Assembly: GCF_036365525.1 (NCBI RefSeq)
Contig: NW_027140453.1
Location: forward strand, 1,426,001-1,490,000
Origin: Heterodontus francisci
Taxonomy: Eukaryota
DNA: 64,000 nt
Reading direction: 5' to 3'
In this document: positions 13,943-64,000 of the stretch, one piece after another
Position numbering within the stretch: position 1 is the first letter of the stretch
How the letters are laid out: every line of letters begins with the position of its first letter
Made by a program: the position numbers and the translations under genes
Notes under the pieces: generated by a model
What the model was told of the DNA's origin: nothing
The model's input: the letters and a program-made list of their open reading frames with translations, nothing else
Databases searched by the model: none

Positions 13943-13981
13943 AGTTTTTGCCGTGTTTCCTTGCATTCTAGTTACACTGTG
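13943..13981 (-). promoter_or_regulatory. 23-RSS of V5
   Basis: CACAGTG (13981..13975), 23-bp spacer, GCAAAAACT (13951..13943). Confidence 0.93.
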
Positions 13982-17596: not shown

Positions 17597-17635
17597 TGTT
17601 TTTGTTGAACTGCTCCATCTCTCTGAGTTACTGTG
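17597..17635 (-). promoter_or_regulatory. 23-RSS of V6 (variant heptamer)
   Basis: CACAGTA (17635..17629), 23-bp spacer, ACAAAAACA (17605..17597). Confidence 0.85.
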
Positions 17636-17845
17636 CAGACTCCAGGCACAGAAATGCACGGCCGAGTGATCCTCCCACAGGCTGGAGGACTCCAGGTTGA
17701 ACTGGGCGTCAGTCGGTCACTTGGCGCTGAAACCCCCCCCCCCCCCCCCCCCTCCCCCACCGTCCCCTCTGAAATCACACTTGGTACAGCTGGGGAGTAA
17801 AACATTATTTTGAAATAAGACCATGAGACTCAGTAACAGATATAT
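17636..17845 (-). pseudogene. TCR V pseudogene V6 (paralog of V4; intron and 5' half of V deleted)
   Basis: Leader 17845..17809 (ATG->ATA) is fused almost directly to MFYSPAVPSV...; poly-C run at ~17733-17758; in-frame TGA; ends FCAWS. Confidence 0.85.
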
Positions 17846-19655
17846 CTTCCACTGGAAGCTTATCCTGCAATTGGAAAATCAGTGGAAAGAAGAGAGTTGA
17901 GTCTTGTGAGAAGCCACATGAAGATTCAAGCAAGTGATTCAGGTTTGCACAACACCTCCCTCCCTGATGGGAATCCTACGCCCCTCTCTCGACCATTGGC
18001 TGCCAGTAGTTGTTGTTGCATTTGTTGGTATAATTTTGTTGTATTTGTTATTGTATTTGCTGGTGTTTTTCTCCAACTGAGGTTGTTGAATTTGCTGGTG
18101 TTTGAATCTCCTGCTGATCTGTTGTTGAATTTGTTGACGTTGTTCTCCTGCTGAGGTAGTTGTTGTTTTTGTTGGTATTTTCCCTGCTGAGGTTTTTGTT
18201 GTACTTCTTGTTTCCTTCCCTGCTTGAGTTGTTTAATTTTTTTTATGTTGAGGTTGTTGTTTTATTTTGGAGTTTTTTCCCTGCTGAGGTTATTTTCCGT
18301 TTTTTAACTCATTCATGGGATTTTGGGCGATACTGTTTGAGGCCAACAATTATTGTCCATCCCTAATTGCCCCTTGAGAAGGTGGTGGTGAGCTGCCTTC
18401 TTGAACCGCTGCAGTCCATGTTGGGTGGGTACACCCACAGTGCTGTTAGGAAGGGAGTTCCAGGATTTTGACCCACAGTTAGTGAAGGAACGGCCGATAT
18501 ATTTCCAAGTCAGGATGGTGTGTGACTTGGAGGGGAACCTGCAAGTGGTGGTGTTCCCATGCATCTGCTGCCCTTGTCCTTCGAGGTGGTAGAGGCTGCG
18601 GGTTTGGAAGGTGTTGACGGAGGGAGCCTTGATGCATTGCTGCAGTGCATCTTGTAGATGGTACACACTGCTGACACTGAGCATCAGTGGTGGAGGGAGT
18701 GAATGTTTGTAGATGGGGTGCCAATCAAGCGGGCTGCTTTGTCCTGGACGGTGTCGAGCTTCTTGAGTGTTGTTGGAGCTGCACCCATCCAGGCAAATGG
18801 ACAGTATTCCATCACACTCCTGACTTGTGCCTTGTAGATGGTTAACAGGCTTTGGGGAGTCAGGAGGTGAGTTACTCGCTGCAGGATTCCTAGCCTCTGA
18901 CCTGCTCTTGTAGCCACAGTATTTATATGGCTACTCCAGTTCAGATTCTGTTCAATGGCAATCCCCAGGATGTTGACAGTGGGGGATTCAGCGATGGTAA
19001 TGCCATTGAATGTCAAAGGGAGATGGTTATATTCTCTCTTGTTGTAGATGGTCAATGCCTGGCACTTGTGTGGCGCGAATGTTACTTGCCACTTATCAGC
19101 CCAAGCCTGGATGTTGTCCAGGTCTTGCTACATCTGGAAACAGGCTGCTTCAGAATCTGAGCTGTCGCGAATGATGCTGACCATTGTGAAATCATCAGTG
19201 AACATCCCCACTCTGACCTTATGATTGAAGGGAATTTCATTTATGAAGCCGTTGGAGATGGTGGAACAGGACGTACCCGGGGATGGCGATAGCGAGGTCT
19301 GTGACATTGTCTGTAAGGCATGATTCCTTGAGTATGACTATGTCAGGTTGTTGCTTGACAGCTCTCCCAACCTTGGCACAAGGCCCGAAATGTTGGTAAG
19401 GAGGACCGTGCAGATTCAACATGTTGTTGCATCTGCTGCTGTTTTTCACCTGCTGAAGTTGTCTTTGTTGCTTTTCTCCTCCTGACGCACTTCTTGAATT
19501 CTGTTGGTGTTTTTTTCTCCTCCTGACATTGGTTGGTGAGCTTTTTTTTGCCAACGTTGCTTCTGAATTTGTTGGTGTTTTCCCTCGCTGAGGCTGTTGT
19601 TGAATTTGTTGATGCTTTTCGTGCTGAGGTTTTTGTTGTGTTTGTTGTATTGCCC

Positions 19656-20085
19656 GGAGGAGGTTACAGAGATAGGGAGGGTTGTAGGGCTGGAGGAGGT
19701 TACAGTGATAGGGAGTATTGTAGGGGCTGGAGGAAGTTACAGAGAGAGGGAGGGTTGCAGGTCTGGAGGAGGTGACAGCGATAGGGAGGGTTGTAGAGCT
19801 GGAGAAGGTTACAGAGATAGGGAGTATTGTCGGGGCTGGAGGAGGTAACAGAGATAGGGAGGGTTGTCGGGGCTGGAGGAGGTTACATCGATAGGGAGAG
19901 TTGTCGTGTCAGGAGGAGGTTACTGAAATAGGGAAGCTTGTAGGGGGCTGGAGGGGGTTATGGAGATATGGAGGGTTGCATTACCTTAAGCAGGATACAG
20001 ACATAGGGAGGATTGGAGGAGCTGGAGGAGGTTACAGAGAGAGGGAGGGTTGCAGGGGCTGGAGGAGGTTACAGAGACAGGGATA
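19656..20085. repeat. ~37-bp minisatellite (GGAGGAGGTTACAGAGATAGGGAGGGTTGTAGGGGCT)
   Basis: Tandem units; expanded paralog at 48303-49605. Confidence 0.9.
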
Positions 20086-20939
20086 ATTGTCACTGTTCAT
20101 CGAGTGTACTCAGTGTTAACCCCAGTATCATTCTGGTGAATCTCAGCTGTATCTGGTCTCAGGCAAACAGCTGCTTGTTGAGGAAGGTGCCCAGACTGTG
20201 TGCAATATTCCAAATGTAGTCTAACCAGAGCCTCCTACAACTGTGGCATTACCTCCAAACCCTTTGCATTGTAGCTTCATCCATTAATCACACGTTCCAC
20301 AATGCATGACTGGATGCACGCATACACCACACACACTCTCCCAACCCTCTCTCTCTCCCACCCCCTCTCTCTCCTCAGTTTGTTTGACTATGTTGTTAGT
20401 TGTGCATCTTTGTCCTTTAGCTGATCTTATCTGTGCCTCTGATATGAAGAGTCTATTGTTCTCAGTCCTTGACAAACACAACAGCTTCCTGCTTTGCAAA
20501 AGTTGACATTTTCCTAGTTGACACACGGCACAACATTCAAATCTGTTAGTCCCAGGGAATGCAAATATCAAAGCCGGCTCAGAAGAGCTAATGGGCCCAT
20601 TGTGGGACTGAATGAATATCTGACAACCTGGCATGGACACAGGGGCACTGACAGAATCAGCAATCCAGAGAGAATGGAAACTGTGGAAACTATCAGGGAC
20701 GAGGCGTTGGACATGGGCTGGTTTTAACTGAGATGCACATTCAGACGCCCCTTTTCACAGGCAGTGTAACATTGAATAACAATGTGCTGCAAGGTGATTG
20801 TGATTACTGAGGGGACAGTGACATTGTGATTCTGTCACAGGAATATTATCTAGAACCCTGGACTGACTGCACTGCCCAATGCGCTAATGATCTAACAGAG
20901 AAATGTGGGGACAGACGAATCCCACCCCATCAGAAACAA

Positions 20940-21640
20940 ATCCTCGAATAGTCCAACAGAGGGAGGCCATTCGGCCCATCGAGGGTTTGTCATCTCTTTC
21001 GAAAATCAACCCAGTTAATCCAACTCCCCACACTTTCACACATAATTCCCTCATTTAATTCCCCTTCAAGTGTTGAGCCAATTCCCTTTTTGAATAATAC
21101 CATTGAATTTCCACCACCCTATCAGACATTGCCCTCCAAATCCAAACCACTCATGATATTAAAAAACATTTATCCTCATGTCACCTCTGGTACCTTTGCC
21201 CATCACATTAAAGATGTGCCCTCTGGTGATCTATCGAATCTCCCCTTAACCTTCTCTACTCTAAGGAGAACTCCCCTTTCTAGCCCAGTCTTTTTACTTG
21301 ACTGAAATTCCTCACCAACTGAACCATCCGAGAAATTTTCTTTTGCATCCTCTCCAAAGCCGACAGGTCTTTCCCAAAGTGTGGTGCCCAGAATTGGGCA
21401 CAATGTTCCAACAGGGACCGAACTGGTGTTTTATACAGGTTTGGCATGACTCCCGGACTTTTGTACTCGACCTCTCTATTTCCAAAGCCCAGACTGGAAT
21501 ATGATTTATTAATCGCTTTCTCAACCTCCTCTGCCACCTTTAAATATTCCTGCACAAGCCCCCCCAGGTCTCTCTGTTCTTGCACCACTTCACAAATTGT
21601 TTTGTTTCATCTCTCCTCATTCTTGCAGTCAAAATCAAAC
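20940..21640 (-). mobile_element. CR1 LINE 3' fragment (paralog 50460-51160)
   Basis: VQEQRDLG...NLYKTPVRSLLEHCAQFWAPHFGKD. Confidence 0.8.
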
Positions 21641-22499
21641 ATATCAAAGACTAATCCCACCCATATCTGGGACAAATTACCTGCTTATTATTATTCGGTC
21701 AGTCATGGACAATGGTCTGCCAGTAACTCTATAAAGTTTACATGCAACACTTTTCCTTCCAAAAAACAACATCCTCGGTGGTTCTTGTATTGGAGTTTAT
21801 ACCTGAAGCCCACTGCTATCTCAATGTTGGCAGTTGAGGAGCAGTCAGTGACTGAGACATTAACATCTGGTCAGGGACCCCTCACAATATCCCATGTCCT
21901 GAATACTCAAACACTCTCTCACTGAGAAATTTATGTCCTCCTCATTCTGGTTTGTATGTGTTACTAACGCTGTATCTGTGCTATTTCGGAGATGGTATCA
22001 CTGTCGCTGATGTGAGGATTTCATTGTTCTCATTCTGTGACTATATTCTGAAAAACACAATCATTTACTTTAACCCCATCGACCTCAAGGAGGAAAATGG
22101 AAGTCCGATCATTTGTCTCTCTGGAACATCTTGTTTCTCTGCCCCCTCTCATCATCCCCCCAATACTGACCCACTACTGATAAGAGAGGCATGTCTCCTG
22201 TGAATATTCTCTCCCTAATACTTAATGCCTATGAAAGATCAAATATACACAGCCAACTGGCAAATACTAACTATAATATTCAGAGTCCCAGCCCCAGGCT
22301 CCAATCTCCCTACACACTCTCTGTTGGGTAACTGAAGACAAGTTATGTTACAACAGCAAAGCCCCGTGGGTTAGCATGGTCCCAGGAGAAATATTAATTT
22401 GGTTTATTATGGCAGCTACTTTAACCAAAAGGCCTTCGTTTGCATAGATTATGTAATGTCATTCATCATTACTAAATGTTAATATTTCAGCCAACCAGC

Positions 22500-22652
22500 A
22501 CTGCAGTCAATCCGTCGTGGTGTATATAGGAGTTGGAGCTGACACTGAGACTGACACTGTTCACAGCAGAGTGGACCCGAGACTGAGGAGCAAGCAGCTG
22601 GAACTGAACCGACAACATCTCCCACCCAGTGACACCTCCATTGGAGACTCTG
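22500..22652 (+). promoter_or_regulatory. Candidate TATA promoter and non-coding first exon of D8C gene copy 1
   Basis: TATATA 22523-22528 with CAAT just upstream; strong donor TG|GTAAGC at 22653; next acceptor TTCCAG at 23102 precedes the ATG exon; layout conserved in copy 2. Confidence 0.55.
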
Positions 22653-23118
22653 GTAAGCAGTCGGGTATGGGAGGACTGTTAGAAAAAGCAAAGGAGTTTG
22701 TCACTTGCTAGGTATTGACCCAGGGGGTGTGTGTCCTGCTTCTCCTGAAACAACACCATCTCCATGAATAACCTTTGTCAGAAATTCAAAGAGGTTTGTT
22801 TCAGGGATGCAGGAGACAGACCTGGAGGAGAGAGTCAGGAACACATGTGGTTTATTCATAAAAGCTTTGGAGAGTGGAAAGGGTGAAGGATTGGAGTCAA
22901 GTTCCTGATGTTTAACAAGAACATGTAGCTGAGCTCACCTCTGTCTGTAAGAGCCCCAGTGAGAGAGAGATAATTAGATGGAGCTCACCTCTCTAAAACA
23001 GATATACTGACAAACTCCTCGGCAACTCCCTATTTAATATTCCCTCCAATTTCCCTACTCGGTAATCTCTCTCAAATGTTTGTCTTGTGTTTCCCTTTCC
23101 AGAATCTCAGCCAGTAAG

Positions 23119-26100
23119 ATGTGGACTCTGCTGATCATTCTGGGTTACCTGAGTGAGTAACTTTCATTCTCGACAAAGTTCACCCCCAGTACAACTAGAA
23201 CAAGCTGTGTTTATTCAAACCGTTACATAGAATAATCTCCCAAGATGTTGCACAGAAATCTGATTGAAGAAATGTCTGACACACGGCAGGGAAGGAGATG
23301 ATTGGAGGGCTGACTGTTAGTTTAAAAGAGCAGACGGAGGTGGAGAGGCAGAAAGGTTTAGGAGGCCAGACATCTTGAAGCCACATCAGACACTGCTGGA
23401 GGAAAGGGAGTGGAGGGAAGTTCTACAGGAGGCTTGGGTCAGAGAAACAGAGATTTGGTGAAGATTACAGAAATGAGGTGGGAGAGGGCGGGAGAGGTCA
23501 TGAAAGAATTTGAACAGGAAGATGGAAGTTGTACATCAAAGGCGTTTGCAGCTGTGAACCAATGTGGGTCAGAGAGCACAGGGGTGATGTGTGACTTAAA
23601 CTTTCTGCAAGATAACATACAACAGCAGTGTGTTGGAGGAGACCTGACTTCTGGAAAGTGGAAGCTGGGAGGCTGGCCAGGAGTGGATTAGATGATTTGA
23701 TTCTCTAGAAGGTAGAGGGTTTTTGGTAGAGGATTGGCTGAGGCAAAATCAGTGATGGTGGATATTACGGAGGTTGTAATTGGATGCCCTTGTGATGAGG
23801 AGGCTACAGGGAAAGAAGCTGGGCACAGTCGGAAGCTGATGAGAAATTGGAGAGGGACAAGATAGATTCTCGGGGTACCCTAGAGGTAACAGTGCTGGAG
23901 TGGGTAGGGAAGACACTGCAGGAGACTCTCTGGCTGAGACTAGACTGGGTTGAGTGGAAATAGGCCAGAGCAGTTCCACCCAGCTGGACATGGAAGGAGA
24001 GGTGTTGGCAGAGGGTAATGTGGTGAATTGTGTCAAAGACTGCCGACAATTCGAGAAGGATGATCAGAAACAGTATTCCTGACTTGGCTCTTGCAGCTTC
24101 ACTGCTGCTCAAACCCTTTACCAGTTCTTTGGTACCTCTAGACTTGACTATTCCAAAGATCTCCTGGCTGATCTCTCACATTCCACCTTCTGTACATTTT
24201 GGTCATCCAGTATGATACTGCCCAAGTCCCGTTCACCTTTCATCTCTGTGCTCACTGACCTACACTGGCTCCCGGTTCAGCAAGGCCTGGATTTCAATAT
24301 TCTCACAATCGTTTCCAGATCCTTCTATCACCTCGCCGTTCCCTACCTCTGAAATCATCTCCAGCCCCACAACCCTCGGAGATCTCTGCGCTCCTCTAAT
24401 TCAGGCCTCTTGAATATTCCCGATTCGAATCCCTTCCACCATTGGCAGCTGTGCCTTCACCTGCCGAGGCTTAACGCAAGGGAATTCTCTCCCTCAACTT
24501 CTCCGTCTCTCCACCTCTCTTTCATCCTTTCAGACACTCCTTAAAACCTACCTCTTTGACATAGCATTTGGCCACCTGCCCGACCAGCTGCTTCTGTGGA
24601 TCGGTGTCAGTTCGGGATGGTAACACACCGATGAAGTGCTTTGGGACATTTTATTACATCAAAGGCAGTACATAAATGCAGGTTGTTGTTGGTTTTGAGA
24701 CTACACGTTCCCTCTCCAGGACCCACCAGTCACACTGGGTCGCTTGTGCTCCACCTGGCAGTTCTCGCTCCTCCTCCACTTTACACCTTTCCAACTGGGA
24801 TGAAGTGAAGCTGAGATATTTACTGCTTTCTGTTACCTGAGAGCTGGTGGTTAATCTAGAATCGGGAGGACTGTCTGTGAGCAGTGAGTTGGAGGGGGAG
24901 GCTGAGCTGGGAGACAGATGGAAACCCAGTTTAGAGAAGGAGGACATTTTCCATCTTTAATCTGTGGGGCTTTGCCCAGGGCGGAGGGTGAAACTGAGAT
25001 TATTGGTATTTCGGGAGGGTACAAGGCGCTGTGTAACATTAACTGTACTTTATATTAACATTAAACATCTTTCTGTCACTCAGTCACAGACTCCACACTC
25101 ACTGACCCGTGTGTAAATCACACAGTCCTGGACCAGCCCTGGAGGAGCATCGATTGTAATGTCACTGTGGGCTCCGGTCAGGAGAAGTGTGATGATAATC
25201 TTGCTCAAGGATGGTACAGATTTAAAAGGTAATGTAAAGGAACAAATTCTGGGTAAATCAGTTAATGAGGGAGGAGTAAGGGATTTCCCCCAGTTTCTGG
25301 TACTATCTGCTGTTACCAGTCTCTCTAACAGTTAATATTTACCATCAGTTCAGGGACTGACTCTGTGATTATTGTTTCAGTTCTGGTGGATGGAAGATTC
25401 CGGACACTGTTGTCCCAGATTTTCACTGCTCCACACGTGCCACAGGCTGGTTACAGGGTAATTTCCGTCTTTAAAATATCAGATTTACATTCACTGTCCA
25501 GCACTGTTCACGTGGGTTACTTTCTTCAATATTCATAAACTCTCATTTCAGGTTCCCATCCCAGTGTGGGACAGGGGGAAGTAACGAGGACAGTTTGTTT
25601 TAACAAGGCTGGAAATCGCTGTCACTGGACCCAGGAAATAAAGATCAAAAACTGCAGCAGTCATTTTGTTTATGAGTTGAAGCCTCCACCCGACTGTAAC
25701 GCTGCTTATTGTACAGGTAGATTGCTGTTTGTATATGGTGCAGATGGGTGATTCTGGGATGTCCCGTGTCTCCCATAGAAATGAGACAGTTTACTCACTG
25801 CCCTCCTTTTTGTAAGGGACACAGTGAATATAGGATCTGTAAAACAGAGTGAACTCTTCACTAAAACTCTAGGGAACTGAACCAGACGCTCGCTGTCTGG
25901 AGAGAGGGCTGGCATGTCTGGGTAGTATTCTGTCAGGTCTGCAATTGAGGAGATTCAGGTTTTCTGGTGAGTGTCAGACACAGCAGCAGGATCCTGACAG
26001 ACTCTATGTGAAGGGCAGTCACTCTCACCTCACCTCTTGAGTTCAGCTCTTTTGTCCATGTTTGAACCACACTGTAATGAGGTCAGGAGCTGAGTGACCC

Positions 26101-29100
26101 TGGCGGAACCCAAACTGACCATCACTGAACAGGTAATTGCTGAGCAAGTGCCGCTTGATAGCACTGTCAACGACACCTTCCATCATTTTACTGATGATAG
26201 AGAGTAGACTGATGGGACGGTAATTGGGTGGCTTGAACTTGCCCTGCTTTGACTTGTCCTGCTTTTTATGCACAGGACATGCCTGGGCAGTTTTCCACAT
26301 TGCAGGGTAGATGCCAGTGTTGTAGCTGCACTGGAACAGCTTGGCTAAGGATGCAACAAGTTCTGGAGCACAGGTCTTCAGTACTACTTCCGGGATATTG
26401 TCAGGGCCCATAGCCTTTGCAGTATCCAGTGCCTTCAGTCATTTCTTGATATCAAGCGTAGTGAATCGAATTGACTGAAGACTGACATCTGTGATGCTGG
26501 GGATTGCAGGAGAAGGCCGAGATGGATCATCAACTCAGCACTTCTGGCTGAAGATTTTTGCAAATGCTTCAGCCTTATCTTTTGCACTGATGTGCTGGGC
26601 TCCCTGATCATTGAGGATGGGGATATTTGTGGGGCCACCTCCTCCAGTTAGTTGTTTAATTGTCTACTGCCATTCACGACTGGATGTGGCAGGACAAGAA
26701 ATACTGGAATCACTCAGCGGGTCTGGCAGCATCTGTGGAAAGAGAAGCAAAGTTAACGTTTCGGGTCAGCGACCCTTCTTCGGAACTCATTTGATCCGTT
26801 GGTTATGGGATCGCTTAGCTCTGTCCATCGCATGCTAATTATGCTGTTTGGCATGCAGATAGTCCTGTGTTGTAGCTTCACCAGGCTGACACCTCATTTT
26901 GAGGTATGCCTTGTGCTGCACTTTGCATGCCCTCCTGCACTCTTCATGGAACCAGGTTTGGTCTCCTGGCTTGATGGTCATGATCGAGTGGGGGATATAC
27001 CGGACCATGAGGTTACAGATTGTAGTTGAGTACATTCTGCTGCTGCTGTTGTTCCCACAGCACCTCATGGATGCCCATTGTTGTATTGCTAGACTTGTTT
27101 GAATCTATCCCATTTAGCATGGTGATAGTGCCACACAACACGATGGACGGTATCCTCAATGTGAAGGTGGGACTTTGGCTCCACAAGGACTGTGCGGTGG
27201 TCACTCCCACCAAGACTGTCATGGACAGATGGATATGTGGCAGGCAGATTGGTGAGGATGAAGTCAAGTATATTTTCTCCTCTTGTTGGTTCTGTCATCA
27301 CCTACCGCAGTCCCAGACTAGCAGCTTTGTCTTTTAGGACACGGCTAGCTCGGTAAGGAGTGGGCTGCAGTGACTGAGAGGAGTGGTCTGCAGAGACTGA
27401 GGGGAGTGGGATGTAGTGACTGAGCGAATGAGATGCGGTGACTAGGTGGAGTAGGATACAGTGAATGTGGGGAGTGGGATGTAGTGACTGAGGGGAGTGG
27501 GGTGGAGTGACAGGGGAGTGGGAGGTAGTGACTGAGGGGTGTGGGATGCAGTGATTGAGCGGAGTGGGAAGTAGCGACTGAGGGGAGTGGGATACAGAGA
27601 CTGAGGGGAGTGGGATACAGTGACTGAGCGAATGAGATGCGGTGACTAGGTGGAGTAGGATACAGTGAATGTGGGGAGTGGGATGTAGTGACTGAGGGGA
27701 GTGGGATGTAGTGACTGAGGAGAGTGGGGTGTAGTGACAGGGGTGTGGGAAGTAGCGACTGAGGGGAGTGGGATGTAGTGACTGAAGGGAGTGGGGTATA
27801 GTGACTGAGGAGAGTGGGGTGTAGTGACTGAGGAGAGTGGGGTGTAGTGACAGGGGTGTGGGAAGTAGCGACTGAGGGGAGTGGGATACAGAGACTGAGG
27901 GGAGTGGGATACTGTGACTGACGGGAGTGGGATGTAGTGACTAAGGGGAGTGGGATGCTGTAATTGAGGGAAGTGGGATGTAGTGACTACTGAGTGTGAT
28001 GTGGTAACTGAGGGGAGTAGGATGTAGAGAAGCGGGGAGTGAGGTGCAGTGACTGAAGGGAATGGTATAGAGTGATTCGGTGGAGTGGGTACAGTGACAT
28101 AGAGAAGTGGGATGCAGTGATTGAGGGGAGTGGGATGCAGTAATTGAGGGGAGTGGGATGCAGCGACTAAGGGGAGAGGGATGCAGTGACTGAGGGCAGT
28201 GAGATGTAGTGACTGAGGGGAGTGGGATGTAGTGACTGTGGGGAGTGGGATGTAGCGACTGATGGGAGTGGGTGCACTGACTGAGGGGAGTGGGTGCAGT
28301 GAGTGAGGGGAGTGGGATGCTGTAATTGAGGGAAGTGGGTGTAGTGACTGAGGGGAGTGGCATGCAGTGACTCAGGGGAGTGTGATTCAGTGACTGTGGG
28401 GATTGGGATACAGTGACTGTGGGGAGTGGGATACAGTGACTGAGGAGAGTGTGATACGGTAACTGAGGGGAGTGTGATCCCTTCCATTTATCATCACATC
28501 CTCCCCGGTTTCACTTGTCACTAGAACTTTTCCCAGTTCTGATGTAAGGTCACATATTAACATTAAACATCTTTCTGTCACTCAGTCACAGACTCTGCAC
28601 TCACTGACCCGTGTGTAAATCACACAGTCCTGGACCAGCCCTGGAGGAGCAGCGATTGTGATGTCACTGGGTGCTCCGGTCAGGAGAAGTGTGATGATAA
28701 TCTTGCTCAAGGATGGTACAGATTTAAAAGGTAATGTAAAGGAACAAATTCTGGGTAATCTAGTCAATATGGGCAGAGTAAGGGATTTCCCCCAGTTTCT
28801 GGTACTATCTGCTGGTACCAGTCTCTCTAACAGTTAATATTTGCCATCAGTTCAGGGACTGACTCTGTGATTTTTGTTTCAGTTCTGGTGGATGGAAGAT
28901 TCCGGAGACTGCTGTCCCAGATTTTCACTGCTCCACACATGTTACAGGCTGGTTAAATGGTAATTTCAGCCTTGAGAATATCAGATTTACATTCACTGTC
29001 CAGCACTGTTCACATGGGTTACAGTCTTCAATATTTATAAACTCTCATTTCAGGTTCCCATCCCAGCGTGGGACAGGGGGAAGTAACACGGACAGTTTGT

Positions 29101-45337: not shown

Positions 45338-45631
45338 AATTGATAGATTTCAATGTCGGTAAAAAATACCAGAGCAGAGTACTTTACAAATGCTGAAAAA
45401 CAAGAAACACTGGTGGTCCAAAGAGACTTGGGGGGTCCATGTCCATTTGAGTGCAGTGTAGATTTACCAGAATGATAACTGGACTCAAAGGGATAAATTA
45501 CGAGGTGATATTACACAAACTGGGGATTTATTCCCTGAAAGTTAGGAGGATCAAGGTGATTTGTTCAAAGTTGTTGAGATATTAAGGGGAACTGATGGGG
45601 TAGTTTTGGAGAAAGTATTTCAGCAGCTTGG

Positions 45632-52044: not shown

Positions 52045-52194
52045 CTGGTCAATCCGTCGTGGTGTATATAGGGGTTGGAGCTGTCACTGAGACTGACACT
52101 GTTCACAGCAGAGTGGACCCGAGACTGAGGAGCAAGCAGCTGGAACTGAACCGACAACATCTCCCACCCAGCGACATCTACTTTGGAGACTCTG
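52045..52194 (+). promoter_or_regulatory. Candidate TATA promoter and non-coding first exon of D8C gene copy 2
   Basis: TATATA 52065-52070, donor GTAAGC at 52195; paralog of 22500-22652. Confidence 0.55.
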
Positions 52195-52658
52195 GTAAGC
52201 AGTCGGGTATGGGAGGACTGCTCGAAAAAGCACAGGAGTTTGTCATTTGCTAGGTGTTGACCCAGGGGGAATGTGTCCTGCTTTTCCTGAAACAACACCA
52301 TCCTCAGTAATAACCTTTGTCAGAAATTCAAAGAGGTTCGTTACAGGAATGCAGGAGACAGACCTGGAGGAGAGAGTCAGGAACACATGTGGTTTGTTCA
52401 TAAAAGTTTTGGAGAGTGGAAAGGGTGAAGGATTGGAGTCAAGTTACTGATGTTTAACAAGAACATGTAGTTGAGCTCACCTCTGTCTGTAGGAGCCACA
52501 GTGAGAGAGAGAGAGATAGATGGAGCTCACCTCTCTGAACAGATATACTGACAAACTCCTCTTCAACTCCTTATTTAATATTCCCTCCAATTGCACGATT
52601 CCTTTAGTTCTCTCAAATGTTTGTCTTGTGTTTCCCTTTCCAGGATCTCACCAGTAAG

Positions 52659-55600
52659 ATGTGGACTCTGCTGATCATTCTGGGTTACCTGAGTGAGTAA
52701 CTTTCATTCTCGACAAAGTTCACCCCCAGTACAACTGGAACAAGCTGTGTTTATTCAAACCGTTATATAGAATAATCTCCCAAGATGTTGCACAGAAATC
52801 TGATGGAAGAAATGTCTGACAGGGCAGGGAAGGAGATGATTGGAGGGCTAACTGTTAGTTTAAAAGAGCAGACGGAGGTGGAGAGGCAGAAAGGTTTAGG
52901 AGGCTGGACATCTTGCAGCCACATCAGACACTGCTGGAGGAAAGGGAGTGGAGGGAAGTTCTACAGGAGGCTTGGGTCAGAGAAACAGAGAGTTGGTGAA
53001 GATTACAGAAATGAGGTGGGAGAGGGTGGAGAGGTCATGAAAGAATTTGAACAGGAAGATGGAAGTTGTACATCAAAGGCGTTTGCAGCTGTGAACCAAT
53101 GTGGGTCAGAGAGCACAGGGGTGATGTGTGACTTAAACTTTCTGCAAGATAACATACAACAGCAGTGTGTTGGAGGAGACCTGACTTCTGGAAAGTGGAA
53201 GCTGGGAGGCTGGCCAGGAGTGGATTAGAAGATTTGATTCTCCAGAAGGTAGAGGGTTTTTGGTAGAGGATTGGCTGAGGCAAAATCAGTGATGGTGGAT
53301 ATTACGGAGGTTGTAATTGGATGCCCTTGTGATGAGGAGGCGACAGGGAAGGAAGCTGGGCACAGTCGGAAGCTGATGAGAAATTGGAGAGGGACAAGAT
53401 AGATTCTCGGGGTACCATAGAGGTAACAGTGCTGGAGTGGGTAGGGAAGACACTGCAGGAGATTCTCTGGCTGAGACTAGACTGGGTAGAGTGGAAATAG
53501 GCCAGAGCAGTTCCACCCAGCTGGACATGGAAGGAGTGGTGTTGGCGATGGATAGTGTGGTGAATTGTGTCAAAGACTGCCGACAATTCGGGAAGGATGA
53601 TCAGAAACAGTATTCCTGACTTGGCTCTTGCAGCTTCACTGCTGCTCAAACACTTTACCAGTTCTTTGGTAACTCTAGACTTGACTATTCCAAAGACCTC
53701 CTGGCTGATCTCTCACATTCCACCTTCTGTACATTTTGGTCATCCAGTATGATACTGCCCAAGTCCCGTTCACCTTTCATCTCCGTGCTCACTGACCTGC
53801 ACTGGCTCCCGGTTCAGCAAGGCCTGGATTTCAATATTCTCACAATCGTTTCCAGATCCTTCTATCACCTCGCCGTTCCCTACCTCTGAAATCATCTCCA
53901 GCCCCACAACCCTCGGAGATCTCTGCGCTCCTCTAATTCAGGCCTCTTGAATATTCCCGATTCGAATCCCTTCCACCATTGGCAGCTGTGCCTTCACCTG
54001 CCGAGGCTTAACGCAAGGGAATTCTCTCCCTCAACTTCTCCGTCTCTCCACCTCTCTTTCATCCTTTCAGACACTCCTTAAAACCTACCTCTTTGACATA
54101 GCATTTGGCCACCTGCCCGACCAGCTGCTTCTGTGGATCGGTGTCAGTTCGGGATGGTAACACACCGATGAAGTGCTTTGGGACATTTTATTACATCAAA
54201 GGCAGTACATAAACGCAGGTTGTTGTTGGTTTTGAGACTACACGTTCCCTCTCCAGGACCCACCAGTCACACTGGGTCGCTTGTGCTCCACCTGGCAGTT
54301 CTCGCTCCTCCTCCACTTTACATCTTTCCTACTGGGATGAAGTGAAGCTGAGATATTTACTGCTTTCTGTTACCTGAGAGCTGGTGGTTAATCTAGAATC
54401 GGGAGGACTGTCTGTGAGCAGTGAGTTGGAGGGGGAGGCTGAGCTGGGAGACAGATGGAAACCCAGTTTAGAGAAGGAGGACATTTTCCAGCTTTAATCT
54501 GGGGAGTTTTGACCAGGGCGGAGGGTGAAACTGAGATTATTGGTATTTTGGGAGGGTACAAGGCGCTGTTTAACATTAACTGTACTTTATATTAACATTA
54601 AACATCTTTCTGTCACTCAGTCACAGACTCCACACTCACTGACCCGTGTGTAAATCACACAGTCCTGGACCAGCCCTGGAGGAGCATCGATTGTGATGTC
54701 ACTGTGGGCTCCGGTCAGGAGAAGTGTGATGATAATCTTGCTCAAGGATGGTACAGATTTAAAAGGTAATGTAAAGGAACAAATTCTGGCTAAATCAGTT
54801 AATGAGGGAGGAGTAATGGATTTCCCCCAGTTTCTGGCACTATCTGTTGTTACCAGTCTCTCTAACAGTTAATATTTACCATCAGTTCAGGGACTGACTC
54901 TGTGATTATTGTTTCAGTTCTGGTGGATGGAAGATTCCGGACACTGTTGTCCCAGATTTTCACTGCTCCACACGTGCCACAGGCTGGTTACAGGGTAATT
55001 TCAGCCTTTATAATATCAGATTTACATTCACTGTCCAGCACTGTTCACGTGGGTGACTTTCTTCAATATTTATAAACTCTCATTTCAGGTTCCCATCCCA
55101 GTGTGGGACAGGGGGAAGTAACGAGGACAGTTTGTTTTAACAAGGCTGGAAATCGCTGTCACTGGACCCAGGAAATAAAGATCAAAAACTGCAGCAGTTA
55201 TTTTGTTTATGAGTTGAAGCCTCCACCCGACTGTAACGCTGCTTATTGTACAGGTAGATTGCTGTTTGTATATGGTGCAGATGGGTGATTCTGGGATGTC
55301 CCGTGTCTCCCATAGAAATGAGACAGTTTACTCACTGCCCTCCTTTTTGTAAGGGACACAGTGAATATAGGATCTGTAAAACAGAGTGAACTCTTCACTA
55401 AAACTCTAGGGAACTGAACCAGACGCTCGCTGTCTGGAGAGAGGGCTGGCATGTCTGGGTAGTATTCTGTCAGGTCTGCAATTGAGGAGATTCAGGTTTT
55501 CTGGTGAGTGTCAGACACAGCAGCAGGATCCTGACAGACTCTATGTGAAGGGCAGTCACTCTCACCTCACCTCTTGAGTTCAGCTCTTTTGTCCATGTTT

Positions 55601-58600
55601 GAACCACACTGTAATGAGGTCAGGAGCTGAGTGACCCTGGCGGAACCCAAACTGACCATCACTGAACAGGTAATTGCTGAGCAAGTGCCGCTTGATTGCA
55701 CTGTCAACGACACCTTCCATCATTTTACTGATGATAGAGAGTAGACTGATGGGACGGTAATTGGGTGGCTTGAACTTGCCCTGCTTTGACTTGTCCTGCT
55801 TTTTATGCACAGGACATGCCTGGGCAGTTTTCCACATTGCAGGGTAGATGCCAGTGTTGTAGCTGTACTGGAACAGCTTGGCTAAGGATGCAACAAGTTC
55901 TGGAGCACAGGTCTTCAGTACTACTTCCGGGATATTGTCAGGGCCCATAGCCTTTGCAGTATCCAGTGCCTTCAGTCATTTCTTGATATCAAGCGGAGTG
56001 AATCGAATTGGCTGAAGACTGACATCTGTGATGCTGGGGATTGCAGGAGAAGGCCGAGATGGATCATCAACTCAGCACTTCTGGCTGAAGATTTTTGCAA
56101 ATGCTTCAGCCTTATCTTTTGCACTGATGTGCTGGGCTCCCTGATCATTGAGGATGGGGATATTTGTGGGGCCACCTCCTCCAGTTAGTTGTTTAATTGT
56201 CTACTGCCATTCACGACTGGATGTGGCAGGACAAGAAATACTGGAATCACTCAGCGGGTCTGGCAGCATCTGTGGAAAGAGAAGCAAAGTTAACGTTTCG
56301 GGTCAGCGACCCTTCTTCGGAACTCATTTGATCCGTTGGTTATGGGATCGCTTAGCTCTGTCCATCGCATGCTAATTATGCTGTTTGGCATGCAGATAGT
56401 CCTGTGTTGTAGCTTCACCAGGCTGACACCTCATTTTGAGGTATGCCTTGTGCTGCACTTTGCATGCCCTCCTGCACTCTTCATGGAACCAGGTTTGGTC
56501 TCCTGGCTTGATGGTCATGATTGAGTGGGGAATATACCGGACCATGAGGTTACAGATTGTAGTTGAGTACAATTCTGCTGCTGCTGTTGTTCCCACAGCA
56601 CCTCATGGATGCCCATTGTTGTATTGCTAGACTTGTTTGAATCTATCCCATTTAGCATGGTGATAGTGCCACACAACACGATGGACGGTATCCTCAATGT
56701 GAAGGTGGGAATTTGGCTCCACAAGGACTGTGCGGTGGTCACTCCCACCAAGACTGTCATGGACAGATGGATATGTGGCAGGCAGATTGGTGAGGATGAA
56801 GTCAAGTATATTTTCTCCTCTTGTTGGTTCTGTCATCACCTACCGCAGTCCCAGACTAGCAGCTTTGTCTTTTAGGACACGGCTAGCTCGGTAAGGAGTG
56901 GGCTGCAGTGACTGAGAGGAGTGGTCTGCAGAGACTGAGGGGAGTGGGATGTAGTGACTGAGCGAATGAGATGCGGTGACTAGGTGGAGTAGGATACAGT
57001 GAATGTGGGGAGTGGGATGTAGTGACTGAGGGGAGTGGGGTGGAGTGACAGGGGAGTGGGAGGTAGTGACTGAGGTGTGTGGGATGCAGTGATTGAGCGG
57101 AGTGGGAAGTAGCGACTGAGGGGAGTGGGATACAGAGACTGAGGGGAGTGGGATACAGTGACTGAGCGAATGAGATGCGGTGACGAGGTGGAGTAGGATA
57201 CAGTGAATGTGGGGAGTGGGATGTAGTGACTGAGGGGAGTGGGATGTAGTGACTGAGGAGAGTGGGGTGTATTGACAGGGGTGTGGGAAGTAGCGACTGA
57301 GGGGAGTGGGATGTAGTGACTGAGGGGAGTGGGGTGTAGTGACTGAGGAGAGTGGGGTGTAGTGACTGAGGAGAGTGGGGTGTAGTGACAGGGGTGTGGG
57401 AAGTAGCGACTGAGGGGAGTGGGATGCAGAGACTGAGGGGAGTGGGATACTGTGACTGACGGGAGTGGGATGTAGTGACTAAGGGGAGTGGGATGCTGTA
57501 ATTGAGGGAAGTGGGATGTAGTGACTACTGAGTGTGATGTGGTAACTGAGGGGAGTAGGATGTAGAGAAGCGGGGAGTGAGGTGCAGTGACTGAAGGGAA
57601 TGGTATAGAGTGATTCGGTGGAGTGGGTACAGTGACATAGAGAAGTGGGATGCAGTGATTGAGGGGAGTGGGATGCAGTAATTGAGGGGAGTGGGATGCA
57701 GCGACTAAGGGGAGAGGGATGCAGTGACTGAGGGCAGTGAGATGTAGTGACTGAGGGGAGTGGGATGTAGTGACTGAGGGGAGTGGGATGTAGTGACTGA
57801 TGGGAGTGGGTGCACTGACTGAGGGGAGTGGGTGCAGTGAGTGAGGGGAGTGGGATGCTGTAATTGAGGGAAGTGGGTGTAGTGACTGAGGGGAGTGGCA
57901 TGCAGTGACTCAGGGGAGTGTGATTCAGTGACTGTGGGGATTGGGATACAGTGACTGTGGGGAGTGGGATACAGTGACTGAGGAGAGTGTGATACGGTAA
58001 CTGAGGGGAGTGTGATCCCTTCCATTTATCATCACATCCTCCCCGGTTTCACTTGTCACTAGAACTTTTCCCAGTTCTGATGTAAGGTCACATATTAACA
58101 TTAAACATCTTTCTGTCACTCAGTCACAGACTCTGCACTCACTGACCCGTGTGTAAATCACACAGTCCTGGACCAGCCCTGGAGGAGCAGCGATTGTGAT
58201 GTCACTGGGTGCTCCGGTCAGGAGAAGTGTGATGATAATCTTGCTCAAGGATGGTACAGATTTAAAAGGTAATGTAAAGGAACAATTTCAGGGTAATCTA
58301 GTCAATATGGGCAGAGTAAGGGATTTCTCCCAGTTTCTGGTACTATCTGCTGGTACCAGTCTCTCTAACAGTTAATATTTGCCATCAGTTCAGGGACTGA
58401 CTCTGTGATTTTTGTTTCAGTTCTGGTGGATGGAAGATTCCGGAGACTGCTGTCCCAGATTTTCACTGCTCCACACATGTTATAGGCTGGTTAAATGGTA
58501 ATTTCAGCCTTGAGAATATCAGATTTACATTCACTGTCCAGCACTGTTCACATGGGTTACAGTCTTCAATATTTATAAACTCTCATTTCAGGTTCTCATC

Positions 58601-59252
58601 CCAGCGTGGGACAGGGGGAAGTAACACGGACAGTTTGTTTATCCTGGGGTAGAAAACACTGCGACAAGGTCCATGAGATAAAGATCAAAAACTGCAGCAG
58701 TTACTTCGTTTATGAGTTGAAGTCCCTGTTTTATTGCGCTGCGTATTGTACAGGTACATTCATGCTTCTATATCATCCAGAGGGTGATTCTGGGATGTCC
58801 CGTGTCACCCACAGAAATGAGACGGTTTACTCACTCCCCTCCTTATTGTAAGGGACACAGTGAATAAAGGATCTGAAACACAAAGTGTGCTTCACTGAAA
58901 CTCTAGGGAACTGAACCAGACTCTGCTGTCTCTGTCTATCAGGCACTCTGATCCCTGCAGTGTTCATGGCTCACGTCAGGTCCCCACTGCAGTGCTGGGC
59001 ACCTCACACTCCCTCTCCAGGAAGCAATGTTCACGAGGAGTTGGATAGGATCTTCGAGGGTTTGATAAAGATGAAAATCTGACACTGTCTGGACTAGAGA
59101 ACTATATAAACGAGCTCTTCGGGTTTTCTCCACTCTGCCCTCTTCCTTTATTACAGATCCAGAGACTGTCGCAACTGAGGAACCCGAGGAACAAACAACT
59201 CGACAATCCACTAGGGGATCATCGTCTACCCCAGCGGTGTCTGGAACATCAG
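52659..59252 (+). CDS. Secreted tandem-D8C protein, copy 2 (3' exons beyond window end)
   Basis: Exons 52659-52692, 54621-54765, 54918-54994, 55089-55253, 58124-58268, 58421-58497, 58592-58753, 59157-59252. Open, splice sites intact, a handful of substitutions versus copy 1 (N>D, H>Y, T>I, V>A, E>Q, G>R). Confidence 0.85.
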
Positions 59253-59339
59253 GTATCCCCCTTGTGGGTTGCATTCGAAACAGATTCCACACCCAATGTT
59301 ACACCATAGAAGATCAGTCCTCGAGATCATCCAGTCTCT

Positions 59340-62300
59340 TACTGAGGGAAGTGGGATGGAGTGACTGCGGGAAGTGGAAGGGCGTGAATGAGGGAAGTTG
59401 GATGGAGTGACTGAGGGGAGTGGGATGGGGTGACTGAGGGAAGTGGGATGGAGTGACTGAGGTGAGTGGGATGGGGTGACTGAGGGGAGAGGTATGCGGT
59501 GACTGAGGGGAGAGGGATGTGGTGACTGAGGGGACTGGGATGCAGTGACTAAGGAGAGTGGGATGATGTAATTGAGGGGAGTGGAATACATAGACTGAGG
59601 GGACTGGGATGTAGTGACTGAGGGGAGTGGGATGTAGTGAATGAGAGGAGTGGGATGCACTGACTGAGGGGAGTGGGATGCAGTGACGGAGGGGAATGGG
59701 ATGCAGTGACTGAGGGCAGTGGGATGCAGTAATTGAGGGGAGTGGGATGTAGTGACGGAAGGGAGTGGGATGCAGAGGCTGAGGGGATTGGGATGCAGTG
59801 ACTGGGGAGTGGAATGCACTGATTGAGGGGTGTGGGATGCAGTGACTGAGGGGAGTGGGATGCAGTGACTGAGGGGAGTGGGATGCACTGATTGAGGGGA
59901 GTGGGATGCAGTGACTGAGAGGAGTGGGATGCAGTGGCTGAGGGGAGTGGGATTTGGTGACTGAGGGGAGTGGGATGTGGTGATTGAGGGGAGTGGGATG
60001 CAGTGGCTGAGGGGAGTGGGATGCAGTGACTGAGGGGAGTGGGATGATGTAATTGAGCGGAGTGGGATGCAGTAATTGAGGGAAGTGGGATGTAGAGACT
60101 GAGGGGAGTGGAATGCACTGATTGAGGGGTGTGGGATGCACCGATTGAGGGGAGTGGGATGCAGTGACTGAGAGGAGTGGGATGCTGTGGCTGAGGGGAG
60201 CGGGTTGCAGTGACTGAGAGGAGTGGGATGCACTGATTGAGGGGAGTGGGATGCAGTGACTGAGAGGAGTAGGATGCAGTGGCTGAGGGGTGTGGGTTGC
60301 AGTGACTGAGGGGAGTGGGATGGGGTGACTGAGGGGAGTGGGATGTGGTGACTGAGGAGAGTGGGATGCAGTGACTGAGAGGAATGGGATGGAGGGACTG
60401 AGGGGAGTGGCATGATGTAATTGAGGGGAGTGGGATGCAGTGATTGAGGGGAGTGGGTTGATGTAATTGAGTGGTGTGGGATGTCGTGACATGGGCAGTG
60501 CGATGCATGGACTGAGTGGAGTGGGATGTAGTGACTGAGGGAAGTGGGATGCAGTGACTGAGGGGTGTGGGATGTAGAGACCTAGGGGAGTGGGATGTAG
60601 AGACTGAGGGGAGTTGAATGTGGTGACTGAGGGGAGTGGGATGGGGTGACTGAGGGTAGTGGGATGCAGTGACTGAGGGGAGTGGGATGTAGAGACTGAG
60701 GGGAGTGGGATGTAGTGACTGAGGGGAGTGGGATGCAGTGACTGAGGGGAGTTAGATGCAGTGACTGAGGGGAGTGGGATGATGTAATTAAGGGGAGTGG
60801 GATTAAGTGACTGAGGGGAGTGCGATGCATTGACTAAGGGGACTGGGAAGTAATGATTGAGGGCAGTGGGAAGAAGTGATTAGGGGAGTGGCATGTAGTG
60901 AGTGAGGGGAGTGGGATGTAGAGACTGAGGGGAGTGGGATGTAGTGAGTGAGGGGAGTGGGATGTAATGACTGAGGGGAGTGCGATGTTGAGACTGAGGG
61001 GAGTGGGATGTAGAAACTGAGGGGAGTGCGATGTAGAGACTGGGGGGAGTGGGATGTAGTGGCTGAGGGGAGTGGGATGTAGTGACTGAGGGGAGTTGGA
61101 TGCCGTGACTGAGGGGAGTGGCATGTAGTGACTGAGGGGAGTGGGATGTAGAGACTGAGGGGAGTGGGATGCAGTGACTGAGGGGAGTGGGATGTAATGA
61201 CTGAGGCGAGTGCGATGTTGAGACTGAGGGGAGTGGGATGTAGAAACTGAAGGGAGTGCGGTGTAGAGACTGAGGGGAGTGGGATGTAGTGGCTGAGGGG
61301 AGTGGGATGTAGTGACTGAGGGGAGTTGGATGCCGTGACTGAGGGGAGTGGGATGTAGGGACTGCGAGGAGTGGGATGTAGTGAATGAGGGGAGTTGGAT
61401 GCCGTGAATGAGGGGAATGGGATGTAGAGACTGAGGGGAGTGCGATGTAGAGACTGAGGGGAGTTGGATGCCGTGACCGAGGGGAGTGAGATGTAGAGAC
61501 TGAGAAGAGTGGGATGAGGTGACTGAGGGGAGTGGGAAACAGCGACTGAGGGTAGTATGAGACAGTGACTGAGAGGTGTGTGATACATTCACTCAGGGAG
61601 TGTGATACAGTGACTGAGGGGAGTGTGATACAGTGTCTGAGGGTAGTATGATGCAGTCACTGAGGGGTGTGTGATACAGTCACTCAGGGAGTGTGATACA
61701 GTGACTGAGGGGTGTGTGATACAGTGTCTGAGGGTAGTATGATGCAGTCACTGAGGGGAGTGTGATGCAGCGACTGAGGGTAGTGTGATACAGTGTCTGA
61801 GGGGGATGTGATACAGTGACAGAGGGTAGTGTGATACAGTGACTCAGGGAGTGTGATACAGTGACTGAGGGGAGTGTGATACAGTTACGGAGGGGAGAGT
61901 GATACACTGACTGAGGTGAGTGGGACACAGTGACTGAAGGGAGTGTGATACAGTGACTGAGGGTAGTATGATACAGTCACTGAGGGGAGTGTGATACAGT
62001 GTCTGGGGTTAGTATGATACAGTCATTGAGGGGATGTGATGCAGCGACTGAGGGTAGTGTGATACAGAGTCTGAGGGGGATGTGATACAGTGACTGAGGG
62101 TAGTGTGATACAATGACAGAGGAAGTGTGATACAGTGACAGAGGGGAGTGTGATGCAGGGAGTGAGGGGAGTGTGATGCAGTGACTGAGGGGAGCATGAT
62201 ACAGTGACTGAGGGGTGTGTGATACAGTCACTCAGGGAGTGTGATACAGTGACTGAGGGGAGTGTGATACAGTTACGGAGGGGAGTGTGATACACTGACT

Positions 62301-63000
62301 GAGGGGAGTGGGATACAGTGACTGAAGGGAGTGTGATACAGTGACTGAGGGGTGTGGGATGCAGTGACTGAGGGGAGTAGGATACAGTCAGTGAGGGGAG
62401 TGGGATGCAGCGACTGAGGGTAGTGTGATATAGTGAGTGAGGGGAGTGCGATACAGTGTCTGAGGGGAGTGTGATACACTGACTGAGGGGAGTGGGATAC
62501 AGTGACTGAAGGGAGTGTGATACAGTGACTGAGGGGACTGCGATACAGTGTCTGAGGGGAGTGTGAGACACTGTCTGAGGGGAGTGGGATACAGTGACTG
62601 AGGGGAGTGTGATGCACTGTCTGAGGGGAGTGTGAGACACTGTCTGAGGGGAGTGGGATACGGTGAACTGAAGGGTGTGTGATACAGTGACTGGGGGAGT
62701 GTGATACAGTGACTGAGTAGAGTGTGATACACTGTCTGAGGGGAGTGGAATGCAGTGACTGAAGGGAATATAATGCAGTGACTGAGGGGATTGTGATACA
62801 GTGAGCTGAAGGGAGTGCGATGCAGCGACTGAGGAGAGTGTGATACAGCGACTGACGGGAGTGGGATACAGCGACTGAGGGGAGTGTGATACAGTGACTG
62901 AGGGGAATGTGATAAAGTGACTGAGGGGAATGTGATAAAGTGACTGAGGTGAGTGTAATGCAGTGACTGAGGTGACTGTGATAGAGACTGAGGGCAGCAT
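59340..63000. repeat. 23-bp G-rich minisatellite, paralog of 29801-33320
   Basis: Same sub-array order, differing copy number. Confidence 0.95.
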
Positions 63001-64000
63001 GATGCTCAAACTCAGGAATCCGAGGAACAATCGACTAGAGAATCTACTGAGGTTTCATCCACTACCCACCGGGCTCTCGAAGCTGAGGTATCTGCTTTGT
63101 GGGGTTATCATCGCAGAATCATGGAATCAAAGACTGGTTACGGCACAGAAAGTTTCTGTTCAGCCCATCTACACCGTGCCAGCTCTCTGGCAGTGCAACT
63201 CACCTACTCCCACTCCTGCCATTTTCCTGTCGCCCTGCAGATTGTTTCTGCCATGACAATTATCCAATTCCCTTTTGAAAGCCTCAATTAAACCTGCCTC
63301 CAGCACACTCTCATGCAGTGCATTTCAGATCCTAACCACTCACTGTGTGAAAAGGTTTCCCTGTCTCTGTTGTGACTTTTACCACTCACCTAAACCCGTT
63401 GCTCTCTAGTTCTGGATCCTCCCACCAAGAGGAACAGTTTTTCCCTGACTACTCTGTCCAGTTCCCTCTTGATTATGAACATCTTGCTCAAATCTCCTCT
63501 TAATCTTCTCTTCTCCACGGAGAACAGCCCCAGCTTCTCCGATCTATTCATGTCACTGACGTCCCTCATCCCGGGAACCATTCTGGTAAATCTTCTCTGC
63601 ACCCTCTCAAATACCTTAACATCCTTCCTAAGTATTGACCGCTCTCTCGACCTGTCTTGCCACCTTCAATGATTTGTGCACATGTCCCCCCAGGTCCCAC
63701 TGCCCCTGCACCTCCTTTAGAATTGTATCCTTTATTTTATATTGCCTCTCGTTCGTCCGACCAAAATGAATCACTTCACAATTCTCTGTGATAAATTTCA
63801 TTTGCCAGTGTCTGCCCATCCCACCAGCCTGTCTATAACCTCCTGACGTCTATTACTATCCTCCTCACAGTTCACAATACAACCAGGTTTTGTGTCATCT
63901 GCAGAATTTGAAAGTGTGCCCTGTCCGCCCCAGTCTATGTCGTTAATATACATCAGGAAAAACAGTGGTCTGAGCATTATTAGAGAGCAGAACACAGATG

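Follow-up and report, generated by a model that had tools for sequence, protein, structure and literature searches.

The stretch of DNA considered here (the window) comprises 64,000 nucleotides (nt) of the shark Heterodontus francisci (NCBI RefSeq assembly GCF_036365525.1, contig NW_027140453.1, positions 1,426,001 to 1,490,000 of the forward strand; coordinates below count from its first letter). It contains a cluster of T-cell receptor (TCR) variable (V) segments on its minus strand and, antisense to them, two plus-strand copies of a non-rearranging gene with domains of the D8C/D10C type found in GP2 and uromodulin (UMOD). One gene copy lies in each unit of a tandem duplication. Its exons are as follows, where XP_067884563.1 is the closest annotated protein of the same species and "RNA" refers to the contigs described further below.

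23119-23152, plus strand: copy 1 exon 1, ATG and signal peptide (MWTLLIILGYL), donor GTGAGT, phase 1
25084-25228, 25381-25457 and 25552-25716, plus strand: copy 1 module a (exons A, B and C), Pfam D8C_UMOD 36.3 bits for exon C
28586-28730, 28883-28959 and 29054-29215, plus strand: copy 1 module b (exons A, B and C), both internal joints found in RNA contigs
29619-29714, plus strand: copy 1 stalk exon, acidic Ser/Thr, phase 1-1, joint 29215/29619 found in RNA
35147-35209, plus strand: copy 1 candidate optional stalk exon, phase 1-1, 21 of 21 residues identical to XP_067884563.1 (tblastn)
36101-36187, plus strand: copy 1 first tail exon, DTKYKRINVKITSMTDLDDETAKRIVVER, placed by an RNA loose-end match and tblastn
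36888-36983, plus strand: copy 1 last exon, stop 36981-36983, 30 of 31 residues identical to XP_067884563.1
52659-52692, plus strand: copy 2 signal exon, donor GTGAGT, phase 1
54621-54765, 54918-54994 and 55089-55253, plus strand: copy 2 module a (exons A, B and C)
58124-58268, 58421-58497 and 58592-58753, plus strand: copy 2 module b (exons A, B and C)
59157-59252, plus strand: copy 2 stalk exon; the tail exons of copy 2 lie past the window end

The four D8C modules (a1, b1, a2 and b2, two per unit, all on the plus strand) each consist of three exons that total 384-387 nt, are in phase 1-1 and have all of their AG/GT sites intact. Both copies retain all reading frames and the 14 splice sites of the compared exons, with no stops and no frameshifts. 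The D10C gene has at least 10 exons. Its secreted product starts with a signal peptide, continues with two D10C domains and an acidic Ser/Thr stalk, and closes with a tail of ~60 residues. Variants specific to one copy include N/D at codon 25 of exon A of module a and E/Q in the stalk exon, and copy 1 module a has an extra N-V-T sequon (25156-25158) that is absent from copy 2 (54693-54695, N to D). A further candidate stalk exon at ~33,328-33,411 was rejected, as it has a weak acceptor inside a minisatellite, breaks frame relative to XP_067884563.1 and is skipped by the one RNA contig that crosses it.

Is this gene transcribed? The RNA evidence consists of Logan contigs from three runs of one sample, which hold 4-13% of the sampled words of the window, approximately its exon fraction. 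Contigs were placed on 28500-29775 only, an interval that is clear of long repeats and covers module b and the stalk exon of copy 1. GT..AG joints were present at all three of the predicted borders (28730/28883, 28959/29054 and 29215/29619), and a single 338-nt contig, with 3 mismatches relative to copy 1, spans the stalk exon together with exons B and C of module b. The loose ends of contigs extend these connections in both directions: ahead of exon A (28586) the letters are exactly those of 23123-23152 in the signal exon, and past the stalk exon they are exactly those of 36101-36130 in the tail exon. In another contig, the end of an a-type exon C runs straight into an exon A, in letters that are paralogue-like. 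The candidate optional exon at 35147-35209 is absent from the one contig that crosses that interval, and no joint to the last exon (36888-36983) was seen in the contigs placed on 28500-29775. We conclude that spliced transcripts of this gene plan exist and that the gene, or a near-identical copy of it, is expressed.

Might the four modules instead belong to one giant multi-D10C gene that extends over both units, with the V remnants between them being intronic? The modules are on the same strand, all in phase 1-1, and could be chained, and proteins with many D10C domains do exist, as P0002 has 11 D8C domains and the omcins of zebrafish have several (PMC11415648). However, each unit has its own ATG and signal exon, and copy 1 terminates at an in-frame stop at 36981. 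The RNA connects the signal exon with an exon A and carries the stalk exon on to the 36.1-kb tail exon, and the closest annotated protein likewise follows a two-domain plan. We consider a single giant gene to be very improbable and prefer two separate copies of a two-domain gene.

The identity of the encoded protein was addressed with the window exons searched singly. Exon C of module a alone matched Pfam D8C_UMOD (PF23283) at 36.3 bits, relative to a cut-off of 27, and exon C of module b reached 24 bits over a partial domain only. Among solved structures, exons A and C matched only UMOD and GP2, and exon B alone (25 aa) had no match. A library-wide HMMER search with exon C returned 1182 proteins, of which the nearest was XP_067884563.1, annotated as an uncharacterized protein, which itself scores 85.7 bits to PF23283 in two stretches. 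Relatives were found in Carcharodon, Mustelus, Pristiophorus, Leucoraja and Hypanus under the automatic names uromodulin-like or OIT3-like; those of H. francisci, Carcharodon, Mustelus and Leucoraja were scanned and matched Pfam D8C_UMOD only, with no ZP or EGF match. The architecture of XP_067884563.1 corresponds to that of the window gene exon for exon (30/31 residues identical in a tail exon and 21/21 in one stalk exon), although it is a paralogue, being 79% identical in exon C and having more stalk repeats, and its annotation is automatic only. We found no study of, or name for, this protein or its Carcharodon, Mustelus, Leucoraja and Hypanus relatives.

Fold comparisons were made on XP_067884563.1 as the closest paralogue of the window genes. 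Its AlphaFold model has two D10C domains with predicted local distance difference test (pLDDT) scores of 80-95, a disordered stalk and a weakly predicted tail, and in the PDB it significantly matches only the GP2 decoy module and the UMOD D10C domain (E 1e-14 to 2e-12; template modeling (TM) score 0.76-0.89; root-mean-square deviation ~1.9 Å). D10C domains have ten cysteines that form five disulfides, C1-C8, C2-C9, C3-C6, C4-C10 and C5-C7 (PMC8930769). The window modules have retained eight of these ten, with C3 (GP2 C107) and its partner C6 (C145) both replaced, and have additional cysteines in the first loop, one in module a, where it is unpaired, and two in module b; they do not possess the full ten-cysteine set of a D10C domain. 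In GP2, N65 carries an oligomannose glycan that is required for FimH binding (PMC8930769), and an N-H-T sequon aligns with GP2 N65-Y-T in four of the four modules, in a sequence alignment only. At the position of UMOD N275, the alignment shows no sequon in the window modules.

GP2 and uromodulin are composed of a decoy module (beta-hairpin plus D10C), then EGF IV and a ZP module. The shark protein is like them in D10C fold and sequence (39-45% identity, and TM 0.8-0.9 for the close paralogue) and in keeping the sequon at the GP2 N65 position. Unlike them, it has two tandem D10C domains, has lost the C3-C6 pair, has extra first-loop cysteines, and has an acidic Ser/Thr stalk and a small tail after its D10C domains. 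EGF IV, ZP-N/ZP-C and any membrane anchor, whether glycosylphosphatidylinositol (GPI) or transmembrane, are all missing, with copy 1 stopping at 36983 after a hydrophilic tail of ~60 residues. Because of these absences we consider it to be a D10C-domain protein and not a GP2/UMOD orthologue, and one that, having no ZP module or anchor, cannot form ZP filaments. Zebrafish omcins combine multiple D10C domains with EGF IV and ZP, are GPI-anchored and have a proposed antibacterial role (PMC11415648). Like the shark genes they are a tandemly expanded fish family in which the number of D10C domains varies, but unlike them they retain the ZP module and the anchor and have not been reported in an antigen-receptor locus. 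By analogy with the GP2/UMOD decoy module, the shark protein would act as a soluble glycan-presenting decoy or binder.

Its tail (…KYKRINVKITS…MKHMFQDQCPHTKLELDPEDVQC…) recurs in relatives from Carcharodon, Leucoraja and Mustelus. Pfam has no match for it, and its model is weak, with one helix and pLDDT of 57-72.

The two gene copies lie in a tandem duplication that was delimited by comparing the window with itself. Unit 1 pairs from 17805-34438 with 46399-64000 at offsets of 28,594-29,630 bp, with the pairing reaching the window end, giving a unit size of ~28.6-29.6 kb with one plus-strand D8C/D10C gene per unit. Both units also have a fragment of a long interspersed element (LINE) reverse transcriptase, a 37-bp minisatellite and two arrays of a 23-bp G-rich unit.

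19656-20083 (11.6 copies) and 48303-49602 (35.5 copies), no strand: 37-bp minisatellite between the V and the D10C gene
29803-33318 (153 copies), no strand: 23-bp G-rich minisatellite (GGAGTGGGATGCAGTGACTGAGG) in the intron between the stalk and tail exons
27357-28478, 56895-58016 and 59341-62994, no strand: further arrays of the 23-bp G-rich unit

Identity between the units is not uniform. It is 88-95% (~91%) over 17.8 to ~23.1 kb and 97.5-99.8% from there onward to the window end. The step from ~90% to ~98-99% falls at ~23,000-23,200 / 52,540-52,740, within ~100 bp of the first exon of the gene, such that the promoter side of the gene copies is still diverged and the transcribed region is homogenised. 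In the history we propose, the transcribed part of both gene copies would have been homogenised after the duplication, probably by gene conversion, while the V-side flank stayed ~9% diverged.

Gene bodies that are 98-99.8% identical, in a region with long minisatellites that hamper assembly, also raise the question of whether the duplication is an assembly artefact in which haplotypes or collapsed paralogues were placed in series. Against this, the V-side flanks differ by ~9%, copy number in the 37-bp array is 11.6 for unit 1 and 35.5 for unit 2, and the V remnants of the two units are different halves of a V. Haplotype copies would share such features, so these differences argue against haplotypes, and we think an artefact is quite improbable and treat the duplication as real.

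On the minus strand, translation and signal scans identified seven V segments in the window. VH-like denotes similarity to antibody heavy-chain V domains and 23-spacer signal denotes a recombination signal of heptamer, 23-bp spacer and nonamer; FR and CDR are framework and complementarity-determining regions.

468-758 (signal 426-464), minus strand: V1, open TRBV30-like V exon, CAWS end, 23-spacer signal, Pfam V-set 39.2 bits
5124-5417 (5080-5417 with signal), minus strand: V2, open, VH-like, CAAS end, 23-spacer signal with heptamer CACAGCG
~8462-8760 (8424-8760 with signal), minus strand: V3, VH-like pseudogene, CGAH end, in-frame stops, 23-spacer signal
12415-12701 (12373-12860 with leader and signal), minus strand: V4, CAWS-family, FR2 frameshift, 23-spacer signal
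~13981-14280 (13943-14280 with signal), minus strand: V5, VH-like pseudogene, paralogue of V3, in-frame stop, 23-spacer signal
17597-17845, minus strand: V6, signal 17597-17635, 3' half of a CAWS V 17636-17805, leader exon remnant with start ATG changed to ATA
46087-46443, minus strand: V7, leader, leader intron and 5' half (FR1 to FR2) of a CAWS V, ending at a 12-mer

Recombination signals are present on six of the seven, and Pfam V-set was matched by V1 and V2. V1, V4, V6 and V7 form one family, the members of which finish in CAWS where the 3' end has been kept. To which receptor locus does this array belong? The CDR2-FR3 half of V4 matches almost solely TCR beta V domains among solved structures. 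A protein-database search found only one relative of V1, the unnamed protein P0001, which is 74% identical, continues into Jbeta/Cbeta-like sequence (…YFGDGTKLVVLGENDTIRPAKVTVF), and finds its best matches in TCR beta chains, to which it aligns from end to end; against one alpha-beta construct its scores were 47 bits for the beta domain and 36 bits for the alpha domain. The beta-like CDR2-FR3 half of the CAWS family, together with the J/C-like continuation of P0001 and its alignment with TCR beta chains, leads us to assign the V array, most likely, to TRB.

The array might instead be of TRA/TRD type, mixed, or an orphon cluster, in which case the analogy with trypsinogen genes that we draw below would fail. 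V2, V3 and V5 are VH-like, with the best solved-structure matches of V2 being antibody heavy-chain V domains and nanobodies (E ~1e-20 to 1e-25 per VH chain); its protein-database search returned no match. A 2025 paper placed VH-like Vs in shark TCR-delta loci and argued that VH-to-TCR-beta rearrangement would be harmful (PMC12227049). In addition, kappa or alpha V domains are the best-scoring matches for the N-terminal halves of V1 and V4. The near-exclusive beta matches of the CAWS-family CDR2-FR3 half, and the 74%-identical V of P0001 with its Jbeta/Cbeta-like continuation and end-to-end TCR beta alignment, speak for TRB, and we regard a non-TRB array as unlikely, though of the rivals weighed here it is the one that we would dismiss least readily. 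V2 itself, open and with a 23-spacer signal, is a potentially usable VH-type V, which is unexpected in a beta-type array.

The V remnants at the edges of the duplicated units were aligned with V4, which served as the intact-length reference. On the minus strand, V7 follows V4 from upstream via the leader and FR1-FR2 to …GGCTGATGTTTTACTCC and then switches to a 5'-truncated LINE. V6 begins with ATGTTTTACTCC and follows V4 up to the recombination signal; its leader remnant abuts the 3' V half, the leader intron and 5' V half being missing. The exact 12-mer is present only in V4, V6 and V7.

17794-17805, minus strand: 12-mer ATGTTTTACTCC, 5' edge of the V6 half
46087-46098, minus strand: 12-mer ATGTTTTACTCC, 3' edge of the V7 half, abutting the 5'-truncated LINE in the same orientation
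45635-46086, minus strand: 5'-truncated LINE 3' end, ORF2 C-terminus and tail (open reading frame (ORF) 45711-46079), far end of unit 1

V6 and V7 are thus complementary halves of one TRBV30-like V that overlap by 12 bp and have 28.3 kb (17806-46086) between them. In minus-strand reading order, the LINE fragment comes first in this interval and a copy of the V leader exon comes last. The bracketing by the 12-mer resembles, from its sequence, a target-site duplication flanking a copied segment that was inserted into a single V, and we suggest that a TRBV30-like V would have been split when the 28.3-kb segment was copied in, leaving V6 as its 3' half and V7 as its 5' half. One possible mechanism is that copied DNA was used to repair a staggered break. 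The layout would suit a 28-kb LINE 3' transduction, and a LINE-primed event would require a template of 28 kb; we regard both as implausible. Simple insertion of a LINE into V7 was rejected, as the LINE 3' end (~45,635) adjoins neither the 12-mer nor V sequence. Despite being dead, the V6 half has kept a near-consensus 23-spacer signal at 17597-17635 (CACAGTA … ACAAAAACA), so V6 could still be cut by RAG though it is unable to encode a V domain.

Much of the layout described above had been proposed in the first-pass annotation of this DNA, and most of it held. Its seven minus-strand Vs were all recovered, as was its ~29.5-kb tandem duplication with LINE and minisatellites in each unit. Likewise borne out were its open D8C exons with intact splice sites, lying antisense within the V array, and their head-to-head placement with CAWS Vs at 5-6 kb, the distance from V leader to D8C start codon being ~5.3 kb in unit 1 and ~6.2 kb in unit 2. 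It had called for a search for spliced D8C transcripts, and the three joints at the predicted borders provide them. It had described the adjoining Vs as dead, and V6 and V7 are indeed only half-segments. Its definition of the unit as a V plus a D8C gene stands in part: there is a gene in each unit, but no unit has a whole V, as V6 and V7 are the halves of one. It had taken the adjoining Vs for passengers; they are debris of the duplication itself instead of the passengers of a tidy V-plus-gene unit.

The same annotation had gone further and proposed that selection maintains the D8C genes, and here the comparison of the two copies did not support it. Copies 1 and 2 differ at 7/903 exon sites and at 74/5692 intron sites, and six of the seven coding changes are nonsynonymous and one is synonymous. 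By sequence, purifying selection is not apparent from the copy pair, whose high identity is better explained by recent conversion. That the gene is functional is supported instead by its expression, by intact frames in four modules and by a fold conserved across sharks and rays. Comparison of modules a and b within one gene gave a different pattern: introns are 92% identical, exon A 96% and exon C 79%. The differences between the two exons C (25552-25716 vs 29054-29215) cluster at 25601-25637 and 25683-25706, and these patches suggest local diversifying change or patchy conversion from other paralogues.

Could the ZP-less D10C genes then be more than mere lodgers in the V cluster, namely a diversifying family for innate recognition or for decoys? 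Divergence of 21% in exon C relative to 8% in introns, copy differences that are mostly protein-changing, and conversion of the gene body are what point in this direction, and we hold it as a speculative idea with a low chance of being correct. If it were true, the TRB V cluster would lend the family its high rate of duplication and conversion, and a germline-encoded variable family on a D10C scaffold would have been co-evolving with an antigen-receptor locus since early elasmobranchs.

Taken together, our observations make it probable, in our judgement, that the window is part of a TCR V cluster, most likely TRB, that hosts a duplicated, transcribed and spliced family of non-rearranging D10C genes, with the Vs at the edges of the units being wreckage. 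The D10C family would have settled in the V cluster and then duplicated along with it. Several of our findings weigh against this reading. No D, J or C is present in the window, and a scan of its 64 kb found no J-like segments. V2, V3 and V5 are VH-like, which is unexpected for TRB. The coding changes between the copies show no synonymous excess. Two independent breaks could have produced the 12-bp overlap of V6 and V7 by coincidence, with a chance of roughly 1 in 20. Finally, the RNA contigs come from a single sample that gives neither tissue nor expression level, and they show 1-3 mismatches to copy 1 and are not identical to copy 2 either, so their source may be an allele or another near-identical paralogue as well as copy 1 or copy 2.

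This last point leads to the possibility that the window copies are silent or decaying and that the RNA comes from paralogues elsewhere in the genome. No contig is perfect to either copy over its whole length, the one contig with the a-to-b joint has paralogue-like letters, and the 6/7 nonsynonymous coding differences would suit genes in decay. Decaying genes, however, would hardly be expected to have kept all frames and 14 splice sites in both copies with no stop codons or frameshifts, and the best contig is only 3/338 nt away from copy 1. We therefore doubt that the window copies are silent and retain the reading of a hosted, expressed D10C family.

Trypsinogen (PRSS) genes are interspersed in the TRB locus of tetrapods, and they provide the closest comparison for the arrangement in H. 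francisci. In both cases a non-rearranging family for secreted proteins lies among TCR-beta Vs and has been duplicated with them, and in both a T cell that deletes the interval would lose the genes on one chromosome. For the D10C genes, such excision depends on the position and orientation of D-J-C, which lie outside the window. Unlike the trypsinogens, the shark family is D10C and not serine protease, is antisense to the adjoining Vs, and has cassette edges that cut through a V. By this comparison, the position of the D10C genes in a TCR locus is most likely passive, as with the trypsinogen genes, and would have no functional tie to V(D)J recombination. Our search of the literature on D8C/D10C in sharks and on the genomic organisation of shark TRB found nothing relevant, and the annotation's remark that the arrangement was undescribed agrees with our having found no published account of it or of the gene family.

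The presence of an unrelated family in a trypsinogen-like position in a shark leads us to consider that V clusters may repeatedly capture and amplify neighbouring genes. Additionally, the RNA-supported and unstudied D10C architecture, in which two decoy-type domains are carried on a stalk and there is no filament-forming ZP module, bears on the evolution of the GP2/uromodulin defence module. From the split V and the identity step together, the history of one duplication in an antigen-receptor locus can be read in dated, testable form.

Each gene copy has two introns with 23-bp arrays, of 1.1 kb and 3.5 kb, which produce a strong GC skew and long spurious ORFs on the minus strand. All three minus-strand frames of the minisatellite are open solely because its 23-bp period is not divisible by 3. 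These long ORFs were considered as a mucin domain and rejected, as an RNA contig skips the array.

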